Shown in pieces: positions 13,827-31,128 of a DNA stretch of 64,000 nucleotides. Location: the NCBI GenBank assembly GCA_009103225.1, contig RHPI01000772.1, forward strand, positions 289,538-353,537, in the 5' to 3' direction. Position 1 is the first letter of the stretch. Every line of letters begins with the position of its first letter. Source of the DNA: Chlorokybus atmophyticus (Eukaryota; Plantae; Mesostigma and Chlorokybus algae). The position numbers were made by a program, and so were the translations under genes. Under the pieces are notes generated by a model, which searched no databases, was not told the origin of the DNA, and worked only from the letters and a program-made list of their open reading frames with translations.

Positions 13827-16459
13827 CTTGCCACCAGCATTGGGAGCATGCCCTCACCGGTGAGGGGCTTTGTCGAGCATTATAGGTGGCCTCCCGCGAC
13901 TAACCTAGCCAAGATGGCGGCTTAGAGCCACCTGCTCCACCAGCTGACCCGCCCCCTCCGCTAGTTGATTCACCCCCCTTAAAAGAGTAGGCCCCTTCAA
14001 CAGCGGGGGAATCCACCGCGGAGGGCACATCCGAAGTCGAGATGGAGGACCCAGCTGCACCAACGCAAGAAGGTGAACCACGAGCTGCACTTGTTGTACT
14101 CGCCGAAACATTGGCTGACAGCCCAGCCAACACAGCGTTGTTGCCCCGTCATCATTAAGCCTTTGCGGGCCACCTGACACCATAGACCAACTCCGGTTTC
14201 ACCCAAACATTGGCATAGTTTACAACCTTCTGAGCCATGTCACTTTTGCACACCACTGCTGGTCCCCTCGCCACGTACTGTTTGACACCGGCGCCCATCC
14301 TGTTATCACGTGCAGGCGAGCTGGCGAACTCATTGGTATTGACCTCGATGATTTGGATGAGTTGTCGCACGAGATCCACACTACTTATGGCGCTTTGGAG
14401 ACAACCAGAGGAGAGACGCGCCAGCGCATACCACTGCGCTGCATCGGCTACAGATGAGAAGAGACTACCGTCCAAAATGTGTTTTGCCTTGTCTCCAATT
14501 CGGAAATGTTGGACATCTTCATTGGCATTGAGGCCTTGTTTTCAATCATCGCGGTAATCAACACATGGTTAGAGCACGCACTCTTCCGGCCACGCTGGCA
14601 TCGGGGCAATGGAACACTCGCTGTTGTTCCTCTACGCTTTCGCACCTCTTCTCATTACCCTCTTACATCTATTCCTACCCGACGCGCCAACGTCGTTTTG
14701 CAATGCAGCTTGAACCTGCCTGAGGGGGATCAAGTAAAACCTTAGGCGCTTTACTTAACAAGCTTAAATCACACACGAACACCTTTGCGTGCACTGCGAT
14801 AGGCTTGTCCACATTCATTCTAAGTTAAGGAGCTTGTTGACTTGCAATTTACTCGCACCGTTACACATAAGTGCTAGTTTTAGAGCTGTGTGGGGGGGTT
14901 AAGGGGTATTGCTATATTTGCAAAGGCTTGGTCGCAAGTCTGTGCGACACACTCATTCATTTATTGTTGTAGGCATTGCTAACTTTTGATGATACGTTAT
15001 TCTAGACCGAGCGTATACATTGCGGTTAAAGTTGGTTGGTTATCAGCTTAAGGAGGGGGGNGAGACCAGATAATTGTTCATATGAGGCAGCGTGGTATCC
15101 TTGCACTCGTCCTTGAGGAGACTTATGCAAACAGCACCGGCGGAGTCCAACATCGCCGCTGCTACACAATGTAACTCACGTTTTGAAGTGCATGACAAAA
15201 TATCAACTTCACAAACTGAGGCTCCTCGTAAAGTAGCCAAGCAAGTTCCCGCACAGCACCGCCGGCTTGCACAGGCTATTGCGGCCCGCGTGGCACCGCT
15301 CCAGTCACCTCGCCCCCTGTGCCTCTCGATAGTCTTCGCTAGCTGGACCTTTCTACAATGTGCATGACACCACAGCGGCGTTGCGACGGCAGTATGTCAA
15401 AGGTGATATGTTGTTAAAGGTACATGTATAGGCGGCGCTTACATGTAGTTGGTACGATCAGCTTAACCTTAATAGATACGGGAGTTACAAAAGTTACAGG
15501 AGATTTGGCAGTTATGGTTAGCCGTTATGATCAACCGCCGTCAACTTTCACTTGGACTGTTGACTAATGTTGACTAGTGTTGACTTTGACTCGGATTGAA
15601 TAGAGTTGACTAGTGCTTGATAGCATGGTATATAAGACACTGTATACTGCTTAATACAATGGGTCGCATATTGTCTCTGTAGTTGGCGTGCTTGCTTGTA
15701 ATAGACAAGGCCAAATTTCGTAATTTTCATGGCCATTTTAGGCCTTATTTGTGAGATACCATGTTATTCATAACTTGTGATGGATATCGGCGAGTTGCGA
15801 GTCTGCCGCAGATATCGACCGGCCCAGGGCCTGTCTGGAAGACGCCAGAAAACGGAGGGCCAGTCGAGAAGGGCTCGACTAGATTTCTGGAAGGGCCTGG
15901 CGCCAAGTAGTATAACTTGACTATATGAGCAGCAAATGAGGAGATCTTTGGTGCGTCGGACAGTTCTAAAAGTGTACTACAACATTCTGCAAGAATATCT
16001 TAGCTTCTAGTGCCGTCTAGCGCTAGAATCGTCTAAACAATAGCATGTTCAGACTGATAGGTATAAAAGTGACATTTTACAATTTGCAATACAACCTTTG
16101 GGTCCCTAGTTTCTTGTGTGCAAGCTTGGTGGTGGTTAGCAGGGGTTGCTAGCGTGTGTCCACTGGTGTGTGCTTGCTTGTGTGACGATCCAAGGCGCTA
16201 CACGTGTCGGTGTGTAGCTTGGAGCGCATGCGCGTGCGTATGCGAGTGGCGGGGCGCGCGTGTGTGCTTGGCAGAGGGGGCAAGGTTCCGGTGTGAATAC
16301 CGTGTCTTGGTGAGAGGGTAGTTGATTGGACCAACTCACAGGTGACAAGGCACGAGCACCGTCACAACTGGTATCAGAGCATGGTTTACGAAGGGAGAGC
16401 GGAAGTGTGTGGGCGTTTACACTTTTCATTCGGGAGCGGAGTGTAGTGTGTTAGTGGAG

Positions 16460-17508: not shown

Positions 17509-18068
17509 TAGGAAGGAGCCTCATGCACGTACGAATGCTGTGACAATTCTATCAAGGAGGTCAGAGGAGATGGCTATGAACGCGCCAACGGTGGTGAGTT
17601 ATGCAAAAGAGGAAATCGCAAAGTACTTCGGGCTTCGAGCACACATTTGCGATGACCAAGGACGATAGAGAGAGTGTAAGCTCATAATCGATAGCGGTGC
17701 CAATAGCAACTTTATAAGTTATGATATTGCGCGGCGTTACAGTTGGCTTTCGTCATTACGAGGAGGTGAAGTGAAGCTTGATGATGGAGAGCCACCCTCT
17801 GGAGGTAATGGCGCTGCGTTCATGATCAAAGAGTTGTGCGTTCGCATTGGGAAGATGAAGGAGAACATTCACCTCTCAGATCGCAGGGCGGATCGGCGGC
17901 GGCGGAGGGGGTGAAGGAATGNAGGCTGGTCTCCTACCCCTGGGCAGGGGGGCTCTCTGACCCCGCCTGATTCGGCGGTAGTTTGCCCGCTGCGCTGCAG
18001 CAGCTGGTCAACGCAGCTGACTTTTCTGGTGCAGCTCCTAAACGCTGCACCACGCGGAGACCATAGCC

Positions 18069-21000
18069 ATGGTGGCTGCTGGTGATCAGGGGCAGGTCCC
18101 CCTGACTCCTCTCCTACCTATGGAGGACTTCCCTTTCCTCGGAGGCGTCGTCCATGAGCGACGAGGAGCGTCTCCTGGTGTTCCAGTTCCGGACGAGCCC
18201 GTGCTCAAGCCCGCTACATGGGCGGATGCGGTGGCAGGCGCCCCTCGGCAGCCACCCCTCCATTCTCTCGATAGCATCGAGGGGACTCTCTCAGAGAGTC
18301 CCACTCTCACAGCTAAGTTGATGGCTGATCTTGCACACACTCCAGGCATCATTGCTAGCACCCTCACCACCACATCCGCATATGCTATCTCACTAGATGA
18401 GCGTGCGTGTGAGCGGTGGCAGTCAGTCTTAGAGCAGCAAGCACTAGTGTTTAGATTCAGATGCACTGAGCCTCAGACATTAGAGTCACGCTTGACATGG
18501 ATAGAAGCTTTGAGTGCACGCAACCCGGCTGCTCCACTGATTGCATCAGTGCACTACACACGGGCGGGGGAAATCCAAGCACTCTTTCACACGGCATCCG
18601 GCACAAAGCACGTCCTTGCCCTTGCAGAGCAACGTCGCTTGCCCACGCTGTTGGGCAAGCCAGTCACGGTGCTTTGTTGGAGCGAGGGCGGTGACGACGA
18701 CAACTTCTAGGTCTCCTTCCAGGGAGCGCATCCTCGAGTCCTTTTCTCTCTCTCTCAAGTCCTTTCCCCGTATGGGCAGCTTGGCGATCCCCTCCGCTCA
18801 GCCGCCTCCGCTTCCCGCTCGTTCACCACACCATCTATGCGCTTTTGCTTCAAACGCAAGGCAGGTGCAGTGCTCCCCCCCTCCGTGCTCATCAAGTCCG
18901 TGTCAGGAGGAGTGGAGCACCTCACGGAGGTGCGCATCATCACCCCCCAGACACCTCCCACCTGCTTCCGCTGCAAGCAAGTGGGGCACTTGCGCAGTCA
19001 TTGCACGGCGCCCCTCCCAGCGTTGACGGCAGCACAGCAAGGCGCAGCTCCCCCCCGCAGACCAGGAGCCTCTCCCCCCCTCAACAACCCCCCCCTTTAC
19101 TNNNNNNNNNNNNNNNNNNNNNNNNNNNNNNNNNNNNNNNNNNNNNNNNNNNNNNNNNNNNNNNNNNNNNNNNNNNNNNNNNNNNNNNNNNNNNNNNNNN
19201 NNNNNNNNNNNNNNNNNNNNNNNNNNNNNNNNNNNNNNNNNNNNNNNNNNNNNNNNNNNNNNNNNNNNNNNNNNNNNNNNNNNNNNNNNNNNNNNNNNNN
19301 NNNNNNNNNNNNNNNNNNNNNNNNNNNNNNNNNNNNNNNNNNNNNNNNNNNNNNNNNNNNNNNNNNNNNNNNNNNNNNNNNNNNNNNNNNNNNNNNNNNN
19401 NNNNNNNNNNNNNNNNNNNNNNNNNNNNNNNNNNNNNNNNNNNNNNNNNNNNNNNNNNNNNNNNNNNNNNNNNNNNNNNNNNNNNNNNNNNNNNNNNNNN
19501 NNNNNNNNNNNNNGGCAGCTGCGCAGGCCCCCCCCCCTCGTCTCCCCACCCCACCTTACCCGCACCCTCCGCCAGCGCTTCGTGCGCAGATCTTGCCCTC
19601 GTCCTCCAGCAGCTGCCTCGCATGACTGCTGATGGCCCAACCCAGCAGCAAACGCTGGAAGGTTGGCTGGAGACAAAGCTTCCGCCGCCGCGCGCAGAGC
19701 ACCCTCCTCCCTCCCCGCGTGTGGCTCCGTATCCGTCACCCTCAAAGTTGTGGTGTGACGATCAGGATGAGGAGGATGACCTCCCGCCAGCCCCGCCTGC
19801 TGGTGGGATGGTCCCCCACGACCAGCCAGTGCAAGCTGCTCGCACAACCCAGGCTGATCGCCATCCCCAACAGCGTCTCTGGTTGGGAGAACTGCTTGAG
19901 GATGCGGGTTTCAAGCCTTCTTCTTCACCATGGGAGACGGCGTTCATCGTCCCAGTGGTGCTTGCCAACGCAGGGGACTCCGCTGACTGCTTGTCCCTAC
20001 TTCTCACGGACACAACACAACGCAACACGGGGCTGCGTTTTGGCAACCTCTTCCCCTCTGCGCAGGGTGAGGCTGACGGCATGCAACATTGTTGCTCCAT
20101 ACTGCGGGCAACGCTGGAGCAGGCCGGTGTGTCACTAGACGCCACCAGGAAGGACGCTGAGCTTGAGTCGTCTGTCTCAAACTCAAGCCCACTCGCGGGG
20201 GGCACGCCATTGCATCCGTGCCTATTCGTTCTTTGCCCACTGCTTCTTCCTGCCGAGGCATGCCACCAAGCAACGGCGCAGCAGCAATGGGTGTCCTTGT
20301 CGGAGTGGCAAGCCCAGGCCCGCCCCAAACTTAGCAAGCACGGAAAGCCTCGCATCACACCCTTGATGATAGCCTCCGCGATGCGCACATGGTGGGAGCA
20401 ACATGCACGCACTCCGCTATCATCACCGTCTCACCCCTCCTCCTCACACACAGACTTCTCGGAGTCTCCCTACACTACCCCTCGCCCACACCACCCCGCA
20501 ATGTCCGCCTCCCCATCCCCAATGGACAGCTCCTCCGTTCCCCGCCTCCCTCCCCCATCCCACCACACACCCTTCCGGGAGGCCTCCCCCCCGTCGGTGA
20601 GAAGAAAATTGCAGCTCTCCCCGTCACACCCCCCTCTCCCCGCAATCACCACCACCCCTTCGGAGAGACTTGCACCCCACCCGCATGCTCTGGCAGTCCT
20701 GGTGTACAAGTATGCGGCCCAATGCTGGTGGCTGGGTCTGGTTCGCCAGAACGGCGACAAGCTAACCATCCCGGCTACCTTGCCAGCGGACCCCTCCCCC
20801 TCCGATCATGGTAGGCAGGCGCGGGGGCTGGCTTTGGCCATGCTGGGCGTCCCGGAGTCTACACATTTTACTCGAAGCCCGGAGCTCTCATTCATGCACA
20901 CGGCGGCAGATGGCACGCCATACCATGTTCACACGTGGTTGTGGCACGACGAGGAAGTAATGTCACAACCCCCCAACACCTCAGGCGCGGAGGATGTGCT

Positions 21001-21211
21001 GTGGGTTGATCCACTCCTTGTTGAGGGCGTTGCGGGAGGCAGCCACAACCTCGTTGAGGCACAGGTGCTGGAGATGTTAGAGCACGCTTCTCACGTCACC
21101 GCCAACACCTCCGCTCAGCACCCTTCTTCATGTCCGTCATGGCCTTTGGCTGGCGGAACCCCTCCTCAAGGCGCGCCATACTCTTGGAAGCGGGTGTTGG
21201 GCCTTGACTGA
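18069..21211 (+). pseudogene. LINE ORF1 (DUF4283-like region, CCHC knuckle, long Pro-rich extension with two Nudix-like segments)
   Basis: ORF from ATG 18069 with one in-frame TAG at 18708 (probable TGG). Knuckle CFRCKQVGHLRSHC at ~18960. After the N gap an open frame of ~565 codons runs 19514-21211; its frame relative to the part before the gap is unknown. Confidence 0.75.
19102..19513. other. Assembly gap (N run)
   Basis: 412 N. Confidence 1.
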
Positions 21212-24200
21212 TGCAAGCGTCTTCAAGTCTCACGTCCACGTTCTCCGTGTGGACATGGAATGTTCGAGGCATGAACGGCAATCAGTCAAGCTTGGCAGGT
21301 GCATCTTCGCATGGTCGGCGTCACATATCGGCAATCACCCGCTTTCGCTTATGGCCTTCGACGAAGGATGGAGTCCTTCTTTTGCAAGAGACCAAACTAG
21401 GAACGTCACCAGCTGCTCAATGGACGGCGAAATGCTGTTGGCGAGGCCTGAGTGTGTGGGGCCCTGCGGAAGGCACACGCGGGGGGGTGGCAATCCCGTG
21501 CCCACCAGCTTGGCAGGACTATATCATTGACACAGGCGTGGCCGCCCCTGCTAGATACTTTTGGGTGCGTGTTCGTTGGTTTGGTGGAGTCCTTCTCCTC
21601 GCCAGTGTGTACACACCCTCGGACACGCGAGAGGCCAGAGACGCTTTCTTCTCTACACTCCCCTCTCTCCTCCCTCACGCGGATTGGTATTTGCTGGGTG
21701 GTGACTGGTACTGTGTGGAGGATGTGGATGAGGATTGCTCTCGCCACGGTAGACTCCCTAGCATGGAAGACGCAGGTGCTCTTCATGCGATGGTGGGGGA
21801 GATGGACTTGCATGATGTGTGGCGCAGCTGCAACTTTGGCACTCGCGCCTTCACTTGGGACAACAGGCGTGAGGCCACAGGCTTGCGCGCCTTGATCGGT
21901 TTTATGCTTCCGCCACTCTCAATACTTTCTTCGACAGCTCCTCAATCCTGCAGGAGGAGTGGCTGTCTGACCATAAGCCAGTACATTTATCTATACGCTC
22001 TAGCTCGGAAGTGGACCAGGGCCCGGGCTTGTGGAAGCTCAACCCCGCTCTTCTCAAGCGTTCTTCTTTTATGGCAGAGTTGGAAAGTCTGTAACAGCTG
22101 CACCGGCTTACCTCTCCGCACCCCGGGCAGGCCTACGTACAATGGTTGAAGCTGGGCTTGCGAAGGTTGCCATGATGGCGCGGCAGCACTGGCACACTGT
22201 ATGGCAACAACACAACAGGCAGCTACATCATCTGCAGGACCAGCTGGTCAGATGTGAGGCGGCGTTGTCTGCTAGTCCTGGAGACACAGCCATTCAACTA
22301 GAGCACTCCCGTCTACTGACTGATCTGGGTGCACTCTCTGGGGTGCTGCAAGAAGGTGCTGCAATGCGCTCAAGCGCCCGCTGGCGTCTTTAAGGGGAGC
22401 GGATGACCTCCTTCTTCTTTGCCCAAGGCCGTCCTCATACTCAAGCGCACGTGCTTCATTCTATCACTCATGCCCACGAGCCCTTGCTAACATCGGTGAC
22501 CAGCAATAGTGGTATGTTGGACGAGGTCTCAGCATTCTACCACAAGCTATACACCTCCTCGCCCTCCCCGCCAGCAGCAAAGGCAGCTGCAGCCCGACAG
22601 TGTTGGCAGGCATTGGATAGGAAGGTCTCCGCTCAGCAGGCTTAGGTCTTGGAGTCTCCATTGACGCTGCTTGAGTTGCACGCTGCACTACAGAGCATGC
22701 CCCCGCACAAAGCCCCAGGCAAGGACGGCCTCACCACGGCGTTCTGGCAGACTGCATGGCCTCTCTTAGGGGAGGAGTATTCTCTTTACTGTCAGCACGT
22801 TCAAGCGGAAGGGCGGTTGGGTGAAGGTCAGCGCGAGGGGGTCATCCTCATGTTGCACAAGTAAGGAGAACAGTCTGACCTTCGCAACTGGTGGCCCATC
22901 ACGCTGCTGCCCACCCACTACAAGATTCTGGCTAAAGCTCTAGCAGTTTGCGTGGCGCCTGTGCTTCCTACGGCAGTCCACCCGTCGCAGGCAGGCTTTG
23001 TGCGCCACAGGTACATCGTGGACAATGTGTTAGTGGCCCTGGACACTATGCAGCATGCTGCACACACAGGGCAGCGCGATGCTCTTCTCCTGCTAGACTT
23101 TGAGAAGGCATCCGACCGGTTAGACTGGCACATTCTAAATGGCGCGCTCTCGCATTTGGGCTTCGGCCCGACCTTTCTGCAATGGGAACGCACGATGAAT
23201 GGGGGGAGCTGGAGCTCGGTGCTAGTGTCTTCGCTCTGCACCGCAGTGTGCGACACGGCTGTCCATTGGCTCCCTCTCTTTTCATCCTTGCCACTGAGTG
23301 TTTGGGTGCTCTCCTCCGCATCACTCCTGAGGTTGAGGGTATACGGTTGCTGCAGGACTGCAGGACGAGGCCCACGAGCTAAAGTACACAGGATACGCGG
23401 AAGACACGGAGGTCTACATTGCTCTCACCCCAAGCAGCTTCCACGCCCTTCGCAAAGTCCTGCACCTGTATTGCTTGGCCTCGGATTCAGTCTCAACCTG
23501 AGGAAGTCAAAAGGCATTCTTCTAGGTCCTCCCTCGGATACCCCCCCCCCCCCCCCTGCGGGGTGCATTGGCTGTCAGCAGGGGAAGCGATCTCTCTTCT
23601 TGGTGTTCCCATGGGCATTTCTAACCACCAGGACCAGCTGTTCACCGAGGTGATAGCCAAGATGCGGCGCAAGCTTGAGCTATGGTCGCGCCAGCACTTA
23701 TCCTTGGTGGGGCGGGCTCTCACAGCCAACCAGACCGTCCTGTCATGTCTCTGGTATCTAGCAGCGATAGCCTCTCCCCCGGCGACGGATCTCAGACAGC
23801 TGACCGCCAACTGCAGGGGGGTACATATGGCGGCATGACCCCGAGCAGCGTGCCAGAGGCGGGCAAGTAAACTGGCCCACTGTTTGCTTGCCCAAGCGGC
23901 TTGGGGGCCTAGGGGTGCTGCACCGGACATGGCAAACCACGGCTTTACTAGCCAAGTGGGCTGCCCGCTTGATGGACCTCACATGGGCGGAATGGAAGGT
24001 GCTGGGCTTTCGTCAGGTTTACATGTGGGGTACTGAGCACCTCCCCTCACGGACAGGCCTTTCTCGCTTGATACGCTGGGTACCTGAAGGGGCGGCCCTG
24101 TACGTTGTCGGCCTGCCCATTCGGCACCTTCCGGTGCATTGGCGCAACATCTTTCAGGCGTGGATGCAGGTCCGCCCTGCTGCGCCGTCACCAACAAACT

Positions 24201-25604
24201 TTGATGAGGTTTTGAGACAACCTCTCTTTTACAATGCACACGTTGTGGACGGGCTCGGCCAGGTGGTGGGTGGCTTTCAGCCTTCCAGGCGCTACTGGCG
24301 GCACTGGGCAGAGGTAGGCTTTCTCACGGTGGCAACGCTTTGGGATAGTTGTTCTGCGTCGGCCATGTTCAGCTTCTACCCTTGCACTGTGGGTGCCCTT
24401 GGATGATAGGCCGGAAGAACACGCAGCCGAGCTGTGGAACCTCCTCCCGGCAGCTTGGCGCCTGCTGCTGCACGGCGGGAAAGGGTGTCCTACTGTCGGA
24501 GAGTGGTGGGGCCTTCTCACTCCTGATCACAAGGTCAGTGCGGCACTGCGTGCAGAGTCCACACACGGCCAGCTCTGCACCGGCTTGCTCTTTCCTCTTG
24601 TCGGCGATGAGGGAGACATCCTCGCCCCTCCCCCCCCCCGTTCACGACTGGCATCTCCACGTTGCAGCGCATCCGGGTCCTGCTAGAGCCTGTGCGCTGG
24701 CGAGGCAAGCCCGCCATCGGCTCCCCGGCATGGTTGGCATTGCCCGACACTCAACGCTATCTGGGGTGGCGTGTAGCGGGGGGAGCTCCCTTGCACATGC
24801 TCCACATGGACCCGGCGTTGTCTATATGGGGAACGCAGGCGTCTTCCCCGCAGCAACCCCTCTCATTATGGGATTACACGGTCAAGTTCGGCTACACCCT
24901 CCTCAGCACAGCGCACGCACACCGGGCGCCTGCATTGCGCCGATGGGACCTTGAGCAACACCCGGTATCATGGCCGGCTCACTGGTCGCGCCTGCACAAG
25001 ACACCCTTGGCGGCCAAGCACCGTTCTTTCTTATGGCTATTGTCACACCGGGCATTGCACACAGGTGACAGCATCGCGAAGATGAACCTTTCTGGGGAGT
25101 GTATGTCATGCTCTCGGCAATGTCTTGAGACTCCCGAGCACCTCTTCCTTCGCTACTCGCTGGTCCGTGCAGTCTGGGCTTGGGCCTTTGCTTGGAATGG
25201 AGACGCCTTGGCGGCTCCCCTTTTCCCTCTCCTTTTCCCAGCTGTTTCACACTTCGTTTCCCAGTTCTCACACACAGCTCCATCTGGTGTGGTTGACTCT
25301 TTGCGCATTGACTCTCTGGCACATCTGGGTGGCCAGGTGTTCGGTAATGTACTCAGGTTCCTCTCCCTCCTCGATTGTCATCGTGTGCTCTCTCGCTTCC
25401 AGTGTTCAGGTTTGGGCCAAGGAGGAGTGGCTTCTAGTCACGTTCTCGCGACAGGAAGACATTCGACTTGCTCGTTTCACAGCCTTCACGGACTCGTGGG
25501 CTTGCCACTCTATCCTCTGCTCTACAGCCTGGGCTTCTCCTCTTCCTCGGATACACTGGCATACTCTAGATACTAGTGTTCGTGATGTGTTCTCTATTGA
25601 TTAG
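21211..25604 (+). pseudogene. LINE ORF2 (APE endonuclease, RT, zf-RVT)
   Basis: WTWNVRG, LLQETK, LLGGDW, SDHKPV; RT PITLL..YKILAKAL, QAGFV, LDFEKASD, VRHGCPLAPSLF, YAED; C-terminal CMSC...ETPEHL and LWHIW; multiple stops and frameshifts. Confidence 0.92.
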
Positions 25605-28600
25605 CATGTACTAGCCTTTTTGTCGCCTCAAACTCTTGCATGTTTCTTCTTCATACATTTCTCTTGTTAAAATTAAAAAAAAAACAAAGGAAAATGAAAG
25701 AGAACATGCGATTTTGCTGCATCACCCTACGGAACGGGTTTGACGGGATTTTGGGACTACTGTGGCTATGGCAACATAATTCATCCATTAATTGGAGGAA
25801 GCGCATGCTCACCATCGAACGAAATGGTGAAGAGTCCATTCAAGCTGCGTCGGACGTCATTGAGGCGCGGCACGCACAATCAGGTGGTACGACGACTGAC
25901 CAAATCTCTAATGTGCAATTGAGGAAGTTATTGTCTCCACGGAAGGCAAAGGCTGTATGGTTGTGCGTGGTGCGTGAAAACACTGCAAAGTCAGCACCGG
26001 AGCTAAGTGACGATGTTAAGATGGCTACGATGGACCCCAAGGTGTGTAAACTTGTTAAAGAGTACCAAGATATCATGGTGGACGGACTTCCATCTGGTCT
26101 ACCACCTCCACGGAGCGTAGACCACCGTGTGGAGCTGATTGAGGGCGTGCACAAGCCACCGTATCGACCCGTATACAAGTTGTCACCTTTGGAGCTGAAA
26201 GAGGCCGAGAGGCAGGTGGGGGACTTGCTGAAAAGAGGCTACATCAGGCCTACAACATCACGAAGAGGAATTGCTTTCCACTCCCATGTATTGACAAGTT
26301 GCTGGAGCAAGTGCAAGGTGCGCAGTATTTCACAACACTTGATCTTGCTGGAGGTTATCACCAAATCCGCATCGCGCCCGAGGATGTGGAGAAAACAGCT
26401 TTTAACACACGTTATGGGCACTACGAGTGGTTGGTTATGTTTTTCGGACTTACGAATGCGCCGGCAACTGTTTAAACGCTAATGAACAGCGTTTTCGCTG
26501 ACTTGATTGGTAAGGGAGTCCTCGTGTACCTCAACGACCATTTGGTGTACGCGAAGACAAAAGAGGAGCACGTGGCACTTCTACGGCGCGTGTTGCAGCG
26601 TTTGCGCGAACACAAGGTGTACGCCCAGCTACAAAAGTGCAAGTTCTTGCTTCGAGAGGTAGAGTACCTAGGCCACATCGTGTCGCATGAAGGCATCAAG
26701 CCGGACCCCAACAAAGTGCAGGTGGTGCGCGAGTGGGCTTCCCTGACCAACGTAAAGGAGGTGATGTCTTTTTTGGGCCTTGCGGGATATTATCGCAAGT
26801 ATACCATGGGGTTTTCGCGCATAGCTGCTCCCTTGATTGCCCTACTCAAGAAGGGAAAGCCTTGAAGCTGGTCAGCAACAGAGGAACATGCATTTGCTGC
26901 GTTGAAGAAAGGCGCTGACGGAGGCACCAATCCTGGCTCACCCCGACATGGAAAAGACATTTATTTTGGCTTGCGACGCGTCCGACACAGCCGTAGGAGC
27001 TGTTTTGCAGCAAGACCATGGCAACGGCCTTCAACCGGTAGCAATTTTCAGCAAGAAGATGAGTGGTGCGGAGCTGAATTACCCCGTGCACGAGAAGGAA
27101 CTTTGGCGCAAGTAATGGCGCTACGACAATGGCGTTGTTTTCTGGAAGGCAAAAAGTTCATGCTTGAGACGGATCACTCTCCACTGAGGTACTTACAAAC
27201 ACAACCTCATGCAAGTCGCAGACAAGCACGATGGCTGAGTTCTTTCAACTTTTTAACTTCGATACCAAGTACAAGCCCGGTACGTCAAATGGTGTTGCTG
27301 ACGCGCTGAGCCGGCTTAATGCAAATGAGGCACTCGCTCAAGTGCAGCCCGAGTGGACTGACCGGATTCGGCAAGTGCTTCGTGAAGACATGGAGGGTAT
27401 GAAAGTGTTGCAAGAGCTGAAAAGTGCAGCTACGGACACAAGTGGGCATTGGTCAATGCGCGACGGGCTGCTATGGCACCACGGGCGCTTGTACATCCCC
27501 AATGTCGCGCATATCCGTGTGAAGTTGCTGAAGGAAGCCCATGACGTGCCCATTGCTGGTTACCAAGGGTTAGAGAGAACTTTGGCAAGCTTGAAGCAGC
27601 GTTTTTACTGGCGAGAGATGCATCGCGATGTGCGCGACTACGTGGCGTTGTGCGACGCATGCCAAAAGGTGAAGGCAAGCAACCAAAAGCCAGGTGGGTT
27701 GCTGCAACCTCTCCCTGTGCCATTGTGCAAGTGGGAGCAAGTTACCATGGACTTGATCACGGGGCTACCAAAAACAAAAGAAGGGTACGACGCTATACTT
27801 GTGTTCGTTGACAAAACTAGCAAAATGTAGATTTTGGGAGGCGCTGCATAGTGCACTGGGTACCACACTGAAGTTTAGCACGGCATGCCACCCCCAAACT
27901 GACGGGCAAACGGAACGGGCCAACTGTGTGATCGAGGACATGCTGCGTTGCTACGCTAACGCGCGACAAGACAATGGGGCGGAGCTGCTTAAGTTGGTGG
28001 AGTTTGCGATCAACAACCACCACAATGCAAGCACAGGTGTCACTCCCTGCCTTATGAACTACGGGCAACATCCATAGACACCGTTGACTGCATGGACACC
28101 GCGACGACATGACGTGCGTGTGGAGGCAGTTAATGACTTTCTCACAAAGTGCGCGGACATTAATAAGGCAGCTAGGGAGGCGCTATTTGTGGCATAATAC
28201 AGGCAGAAAAGCAGTACGCGGACGCGCATCGCCGACACCTCACCTTTCAGGAAGGCGACATTGTGTTACTCTTCGCGAAGCATGTACAGGTGCGTACGGG
28301 AGTTAGCAAGCTGAATAAACGCTGGTTGAGACCATTTAAGGTCAGCAAAGTTATTTCGGACGTGGCGTACAAGCTGGAGCTACCCGAAACCATGCGTGTG
28401 CACCCCGTTTTTCACGTCTCCCTTCTAAAGGCATATCGAGGACAACCGCCAGAAAGGCCGCCCCCCAAAGTTGGCACGGATGGTGAACCAGAGTGGGAGG
28501 TAGAAGACATCCTTGGTGAGAAGTTTGTGCACGGCGTGCGCAAGTTCTTAGTTAAATGGAAGGGCAATCTATTGCATGAAGCATCCTGGGAGCCAGAGGC

Positions 28601-30571: not shown

Positions 30572-31128
30572 NNNNNNNNNNNNNNNNNNNNNNNNNNNNN
30601 NNNNNNNNNNNNNNNNNNNNNNNNNNNNNNNNNNNNNNNNNNNNNNNNNNNNNNNNNNNNNNNNNNNNNNNNNNNNNNNNNNNNNNNNNNNNNNNNNNNN
30701 NNNNNNNNNNNNNNNNNNNNNNNNNNNNNNNNNNNNNNNNNNNNNNNNNNNNNNNNNNNNNNNNNNNNNNNNNNNNNNNNNNNNNNNNNNNNNNNNNNNN
30801 NNNNNNNNNNNNNNNNNNNNNNNNNNNNNNNNNNNNNNNNNNNNNNNNNNNNNNNNNNNNNNNNNNNNNNNNNNNNNNNNNNNNNNNNNNNNNNNNNNNN
30901 NNNNNNNNNNNNNNNNNNNNNNNNNNNNNNNNNNNNNNNNNNNNNNNNNNNNNNNNNNNNNNNNNNNNNNNNNNNNNNNNNNNNNNNNNNNNNNNNNNNN
31001 NNNNNNNNNNNNNNNNNNNNNNNNNNNNNNNNNNNNNNNNNNNNNNNNNNNNNNNNNNNNNNNNNNNNNNNNNNNNNNNNNNNNNNNNNNNNNNNNNNNN
31101 NNNNNNNNNNNNNNNNNNNNNNNNNNNN
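30572..31128. other. Assembly gap (N run) between the DNMT and RT regions
   Basis: 557 N flanked by G-rich tracts. Confidence 1.

Follow-up and report, generated by a model that had tools for sequence, protein, structure and literature searches.

An L1-like LINE of Chlorokybus atmophyticus with a long orphan ORF1 extension and two candidate degenerate Nudix-like modules

The proteins encoded by the first open reading frame (ORF1) are the least understood part of long interspersed nuclear elements (LINEs), and few accessory domains are known in them. The described ORF1 types are built from RRM, CCHC, coiled-coil/C-terminal domain (CTD), PHD and esterase modules, to which an unclassified type V is added (PMC4120745; PMC3905857). 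In the classification of Khazina and Weichenrieder, as summarised in PMC4120745, type I ORF1 consists of an RRM followed by a CCHC knuckle. The type IV (esterase) and the PHD-bearing ORF1s belong to CR1/L2 LINEs, and their additional domains are thought to aid the assembly or targeting of the ribonucleoprotein particle (PMC3905857, PMC4120745). In dinoflagellates, the SymbioLINE-Dnmt elements carry in ORF1 a DNA methyltransferase that is under purifying selection (PMC5890265). Here, we analyzed a stretch of 64,000 nucleotides (nt) from the alga Chlorokybus atmophyticus (contig RHPI01000772.1 of assembly GCA_009103225.1, positions 289,538 to 353,537 of the forward strand), which is referred to as the window and whose own numbering is used throughout. 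It contains an L1-like LINE whose ORF1 has a long extension of orphan character, and the two folded-looking modules of this extension tentatively point to a degenerate, noncatalytic form of the Nudix domain.

A long open frame ahead of ORF2

The extension spans positions 19514-21208, where 565 codons are read without a single stop, while the other five frames contain between 8 and 22 stops each. Its frame starts with the first base after an assembly gap and ends at a TGATG that it shares with the start of ORF2. No other ORF of the window is as long (the runner-up among those free of Ns has 353 amino acids [aa]), and its length lies far beyond chance, as across all six frames the longest open run in 2000 shuffles averaged 173 codons and never exceeded 400. 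In addition, codon position 2 of the extension has a lower G+C content (0.56 vs 0.66), as is also seen in ORF1.

The extension lies within a unit that carries both hallmarks of target-primed insertion, a target-site duplication (TSD) and an A-rich 3′ tail. The two repeats of the TSD agree at 17 of 19 positions, a value reached by none of 200 shuffles, and on the plus strand they enclose, in this order, an ORF1 with a CCHC knuckle, the extension, and an ORF2 with an APE-like part, RVT_1 and zf-RVT. The extension genuinely belongs to the LINE unit and represents almost certainly either the C terminus of the ORF1 protein (ORF1p) or an ORF whose translation is coupled to that of ORF2. The reading frame of ORF1 before the gap differs from that of the extension behind it, the length of the gap being an estimate, and in this copy these 412 Ns hide whether the extension is, as presumed, fused to the knuckle-bearing ORF1.

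The remainder of the element is disrupted at a rate of ~1.7-1.8 per kb, from which 2.8-3.1 disruptions would be expected in the extension, and the probability of finding none is ~0.045-0.06. Similarly, in a simulation of substitutions the extension stayed open with a probability of 0.05 at 5% divergence. An open extension beside a broken ORF2 is therefore suggestive of selection and is not a proof of it. A first-pass annotation of this DNA had reported an uninterrupted frame of ~565 codons behind the ORF1 knuckle that stays open while ORF2 is riddled with stops. The frame itself held up well against the shuffles, and ORF2 indeed carries three stops and five frameshifts, but the contrast between the two amounts only to a P of ~0.05.

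Two modules and the Nudix reading

Sliding-window composition revealed two hydrophobic stretches poor in Pro, Ser and Thr (residues ~121-295 and ~385-525 of the extension), which are preceded by a Pro-rich head and divided by a linker (aa ~296-380) in which these three residues make up 50-60%. The division into two segments parted by a Pro/Ser linker, as proposed in the first-pass annotation, was thus confirmed, and all the peptide strings that it had quoted were found where it had placed them. Those of module 1 are AFIVPVVL (19940-19963), LFPSAQGE (20048-20071), RATLEQAGV (20105-20131) and QWVSLSE (20285-20305), and those of module 2 are AVLVYKY (20693-20713), WLGLVRQNGDKLTIP (20729-20773), RGLALAMLGV (20822-20851) and EDVLWVD (20990-21010). 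Tandem duplication of a single module was considered and rejected at the sequence level, as both local and global alignment scores equaled those of shuffles (z ~0). When the two modules were aligned and turned into a joint profile, this gave only chance matches to the 'GTPLH' repeats of ankyrin.

The Nudix hypothesis was set before the modules were compared with the ESM Atlas and with hidden Markov models (HMMs). In the ESM Atlas, module 1 obtained a recognition value of 2654 and a first match at 0.94, and 14 of its 30 neighbors fell into the Nudix set (PF00293, including a giant-virus cluster at 0.93). Module 2 obtained a recognition value of 2996 and a first match at 0.96; six of its 30 neighbors were clusters consisting entirely (100%) of PF00293 proteins at 0.95, and the others were unnamed phage proteins. 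For calibration, 0.95 is reached by about one in 100 shuffled proteins, and a recognition of 2300 by 9 of 100 shuffled or reversed proteins. For both modules, Nudix was the sole named family among the neighbors.

A word search with Nudix proteins of Escherichia coli returned only close orthologues of NudB and MutT, and the Nudix profile was built from annotated genes instead. The custom HMMs comprised 12 annotated E. coli paralogues, later joined by seven phage proteins, and were run with filters off and 3000 shuffles per module. Module 2 scored 1.8-2.6 bits, which is borderline (analytic p of 0.006-0.008 and shuffle p of 0.005-0.012) and exceeds every score that was reported among 42 open stretches of the window used as decoys (best, 0.1). 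Its alignment was in register, with YHVHTWLW, VLWVD and the final helix falling on the matching strands, on the conserved Trp and on the helix at the C terminus of the Nudix profile. In support of this, hhalign at a low mact setting aligned module 2 collinearly over 132 columns, and the low-confidence AlphaFold2 model of this module (predicted local distance difference test [pLDDT] of 38.6) showed the order E-E-E-H-E-E-E-E-short H-E-H, which would agree with the Nudix layout. As for module 1, the residues FP, E, R..E..GV and WVS fell on the corresponding Nudix columns when it was added to the alignment by MAFFT --add. When the Nudix HMM was masked at its catalytic columns so as to favor a pseudo-enzyme, the signal did not rise.

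A number of observations, however, weigh against a Nudix origin. The Nudix matches in the ESM Atlas share 91 (module 1) and 118 (module 2) of 256 features, which is the range of chance or of distant relatives, while true family members usually share at least 170. Against the custom HMMs, module 1 scored at chance (p of 0.1-0.5), and masking of the ten most conserved Nudix columns weakened the score of module 2 to a p of 0.05-0.1. In hhalign, neither module was significant (P of 0.08-0.45, probabilities below 1%), and for module 1 the program favored another register, which runs via a string at 19883-19912. Neither module matched a Nudix sequence profile significantly, and no similarity between the two modules could be detected when their alignment was compared with shuffles. 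Moreover, the Nudix box GX5EX7REUXEEXGU is present in neither module. By inspection against RELQEEVGI of MutT, RATLEQAGV of module 1 keeps the R, the middle E, the G and the U position; the first and the last box glutamates are lost, and its distance from the upstream E deviates by one position. RGLALAMLGV of module 2 contains no glutamate. With one of the three box glutamates kept in module 1 and none in module 2, hydrolysis is unlikely. Finally, the copy is dead, and its intact extension frame is itself only a P ~0.05 event.

The likeness to the box also has to be judged beside a third pair of box-like strings, which lies upstream of module 1 (AGGMVPHDQPVQAAR at 19799-19843 and LGELLEDAGF at 19883-19912). 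Both hhalign and the HMM aligned this pair to the Nudix box without significance (HMM p of 0.1-0.15). It is either the relic of a further module or a motif that arises easily in such a composition; a third occurrence lowers the weight that the motif can carry in this sequence, which also counts against the Nudix reading.

To the same side belongs the lack of any detectable relative. Neither module matched a family in Pfam, PHROGs or NCBIfam at E values up to 10, neither found a relative among the PDB sequences or by word search, and a filter-free full HMMER scan of 1.84 billion representative proteins returned zero matches for the extension. A tblastn search of phages with module 2 was also blank, and scans of viral and metagenome contigs yielded no relative of the extension. 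It should be noted that the endonuclease piece of ORF2 likewise finds only two distant proteins. The databases thus seem to lack the LINEs of this alga, and the blank searches are a poor guide to the distribution of the tail. Five metagenome samples of the Joint Genome Institute (contigs L020-L024; 7.3-7.7 kb, G+C of 0.46) carry nearly identical copies of one distant LINE. Its reverse transcriptase (RT) and APE parts are 40% and 28% identical, respectively, to those of the LINE in the window, and it has a knuckle-like stretch ~1.2 kb upstream of APE. A counterpart of the extension was not detected upstream of APE in this LINE.

Structure prediction did not shift the balance. Run without an alignment, AlphaFold2 reached a pLDDT of 43.9 for module 1, as an all-helix model, and of 38.6 for module 2, and the models were unusable because there were no relatives to align. 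Searches with the model of module 2 by Foldseek (PDB and BFVD) and by VIA wide gave noise only and no Nudix protein (best Z of 4.8), the model being too poor for this to count, and at a pLDDT of 39-44 the fold searches speak neither for nor against Nudix.

Collectively, none of the tests that define membership in the Nudix superfamily returned a positive result, and the sequence comparisons point only faintly to a Nudix origin. The first-pass annotation had described both segments as Nudix-like. This description retains the borderline HMM score of module 2 and the ESM neighbors, but module 1 is indistinguishable from chance in the HMM test and no curated library names Nudix for either segment.

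Competing explanations and a possible role

Our favored reading, to which we assign a probability of roughly 45%, is that at least one of the modules is a highly diverged, Nudix-derived, noncatalytic domain, and module 2 is the likelier candidate of the two. That both modules are Nudix-derived, so that ORF1p would carry tandem catalytically dead Nudix domains that read the 5′ end of an RNA (cap or NAD-cap) or a nucleotide, appears unlikely; in that case, this element of an early-diverging streptophyte alga would be the first retrotransposon with a Nudix domain and would represent a new ORF1 type.

A serious competitor, if itself a doubtful one, holds that the extension is a real, family-specific tail of ORF1p whose modules adopt another or a new fold, such as that of lineage-specific RNA-binding or oligomerisation domains, and that the likeness to Nudix arises from low-information motifs combined with generic alpha/beta patterning. 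This would account for the blank results of every sequence and profile library search, for the chance-level score of module 1 against the Nudix HMMs, for the three competing box-like strings, and for ESM shared-feature counts in the range of chance or distant relatives; it is also in line with the modular and variable nature of ORF1, among whose types an 'unclassified' type V exists (PMC4120745). Such a tail, however, leaves unexplained why Nudix is the sole named ESM family for both modules independently and why module 2 scores in register, at p ~0.01, on a hypothesis that had been set in advance.

We consider it improbable that the extension is not, or never was, functional and that it has remained free of stops by luck in a G+C-rich, decaying LINE, which would make the modules meaningless. 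The death of the copy, with eight disruptions in ORF2 and one in ORF1, speaks for such luck, as do the probability of zero disruptions in 1.7 kb, which at 0.045-0.06 is not negligible, and the G+C content of ~60%, with ORFs of up to 216 aa in other frames. Yet the 565 codons exceed the longest run of all 2000 shuffles, the frame ends exactly at the TGATG overlap with the start of ORF2, the dip in G+C at codon position 2 recurs in ORF1, and the recognition values of both modules (2654 and 2996) lie above the 2300 that 9 of 100 shuffled or reversed proteins attain. Still less probable, in our opinion, is that a host coding sequence or a sequence of another element was captured by one LINE lineage through transduction or template switching and plays no role in retrotransposition. 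LINEs do acquire foreign domains, as documented by the DNMT in the ORF1 of SymbioLINE (PMC5890265) and by the esterase and PHD domains (PMC4120745), and the distant metagenomic LINE with the 40% identical RT has no detectable counterpart of the extension. On the other hand, no donor was found by HMMER among the 1.84 billion proteins, the extension is seamlessly coupled to ORF2, and capture and function are not mutually exclusive.

In our favored reading, the extension is the C-terminal tail of ORF1p, or an additional ORF in tight coupling, in a family of L1-like LINEs; it was retrotransposed as part of the LINE and combines spacers rich in Pro with two folded modules, each of ~130-170 aa. A module with the Nudix fold and without the catalytic box glutamates would bind a ligand rather than hydrolyze it. 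The ligand would be of the nucleotide-diphosphate type, and the most plausible candidate is the 5′ end of the LINE RNA, bearing a cap or another modification. Within the ORF1p-RNA particle, such binding would then supply recognition or protection of the 5′ end, beyond the general binding of RNA by the knuckle region. A Nudix origin would accordingly point to 5′-end recognition or protection of the RNA as a step in the assembly of LINE particles. Should the Nudix reading fail, there would still be an uncharacterised ORF1 extension of 565 residues, with two folded-looking modules and no relative in 1.84 billion proteins.

Anatomy of the element and comparison with known systems

The features of the LINE are listed in Table 1. 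The first-pass annotation had assigned the element to the L1 type, and the CCHC knuckle, the APE-like start of ORF2, RVT_1 and zf-RVT bear this out in the sense of an L1-like LINE. The domains of ORF2 follow one another in the order APE, RT, zf-RVT, and an APE endonuclease followed by RT is what defines an L1-like LINE. The APE piece is 28-29% identical to proteins bearing Exo_endo_phos (PF03372), at an E value of 1e-7. The zf-RVT domain is typical of plant L1-type elements. Between APE and RT (22004-22390, plus strand), four APOBEC-type Pfam families match the same 30 residues of ORF2 with E values of 0.02-0.14; all are below the cut-offs, and, though four related families are involved, the matches are probably due to chance. 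In ORF1, zf-CCHC was recognized with an E value of 5e-4 to 1e-3, just short of the Pfam cut-off. An RRM was not detected in the LINE by Pfam; the RRMs of LINEs are noncanonical (PMC4120745). The parts on either side of a stop entered the searches as separate pieces, with no stop read through and no spliced model assumed.

Table 1. Features of the LINE and its target site (window coordinates)
Feature	Position	Strand	Remark
5′ target-site duplication	17850-17868	+	19-nt direct repeat
Full-length decayed L1-like LINE	17869-25688	+	~7.8 kb including N gap; TSD and A-rich tail at ends
ORF1, N-terminal part	18069-18707	+	213 aa; ended by in-frame TAG 18708-18710; no Pfam match
ORF1, continuation in same frame	18711-19101	+	CCHC zinc knuckle 18963-19004; open into N gap
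Assembly gap	19102-19513	.	412 N; Pro-rich coding sequence on both flanks
Extension, head	19514-19870	+	Pro-rich, low hydrophobicity
Module 1, candidate degenerate Nudix-like domain	19871-20400	+	core ~19940-20305
Linker, Pro/Ser/Thr-rich	20401-20683	+	50-60% Pro+Ser+Thr
Module 2, candidate degenerate Nudix-like domain	20684-21092	+	no catalytic glutamates
TGATG	21209-21213	+	stop of extension overlaps ATG of ORF2 (21211)
ORF2	21211-25576	+	in-frame stops at 22391, 22643 and 22862 (n = 3) and 5 frameshifts
APE-like part of ORF2	21211-22146	+	start of ORF2
RVT_1	22865-23650	+	E value 1.7e-8; goes on in another frame
zf-RVT	~24980-25177	+	E value 9e-10
A-rich 3′ tail, short	25664-25688	+	directly before 3′ repeat
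3′ target-site duplication	25689-25707	+	pairs with repeat at 17850-17868

The LINE interrupts a Ty3/Gypsy element in its protease-like part, and the frame of that element continues beyond the 3′ repeat (flanks 17700-17868 and 25689-26480). The two mismatches between the TSD repeats are both G/A, which hints at an old insertion. Single Ns occur in the window at positions 15061, 17922, 40071 and 59135, and runs of Ns at 19102-19513 and 30572-31128; given these single-base Ns and the two sized gaps, some of the frameshifts in ORF2 could be assembly errors rather than signs of decay. A second copy of the LINE was not found within the 64-kb window by blastn or tblastn.

In the literature searched in full text, no LINE with a Nudix domain is described, in agreement with the first-pass annotation, which knew of no such description. 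With the Nudix superfamily (PF00293; MutT, RppH, NudC, Dcp2 and viral decapping enzymes), the modules share a size of ~135 aa and collinear, strand-like hydrophobic runs. Further points of likeness are the FP..E...R...E..GV string of module 1, a Trp-containing strand in both modules, and ESM neighbors that are Nudix clusters, whereas the missing box, the lack of a significant profile match and the lack of a confident fold set the modules apart from the superfamily. The element as a whole resembles the plant-type L1-clade LINEs with a type I ORF1 in having two ORFs, a CCHC knuckle in ORF1, the APE-like, RVT_1 and C-terminal zf-RVT domains in ORF2, a TSD and an A-rich tail. This likeness is one of domain content, and the element differs from these LINEs in the ~565 extra codons behind the knuckle and in the absence of an RRM by Pfam. 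As in the type IV and PHD-bearing ORF1s, globular domains have been added to ORF1; theirs, however, are assigned by HHpred to known folds with probabilities of 95-100% (PMC4120745, Table 1), while the modules described here fit nothing significantly. SymbioLINE-Dnmt differs in the domain and in the host lineage, and its DNMT is clearly recognisable, while the identity of the modules here is uncertain. It nevertheless provides a precedent, as a LINE whose ORF1, ahead of an ORF2 that encodes the RT, carries a domain derived from an enzyme.

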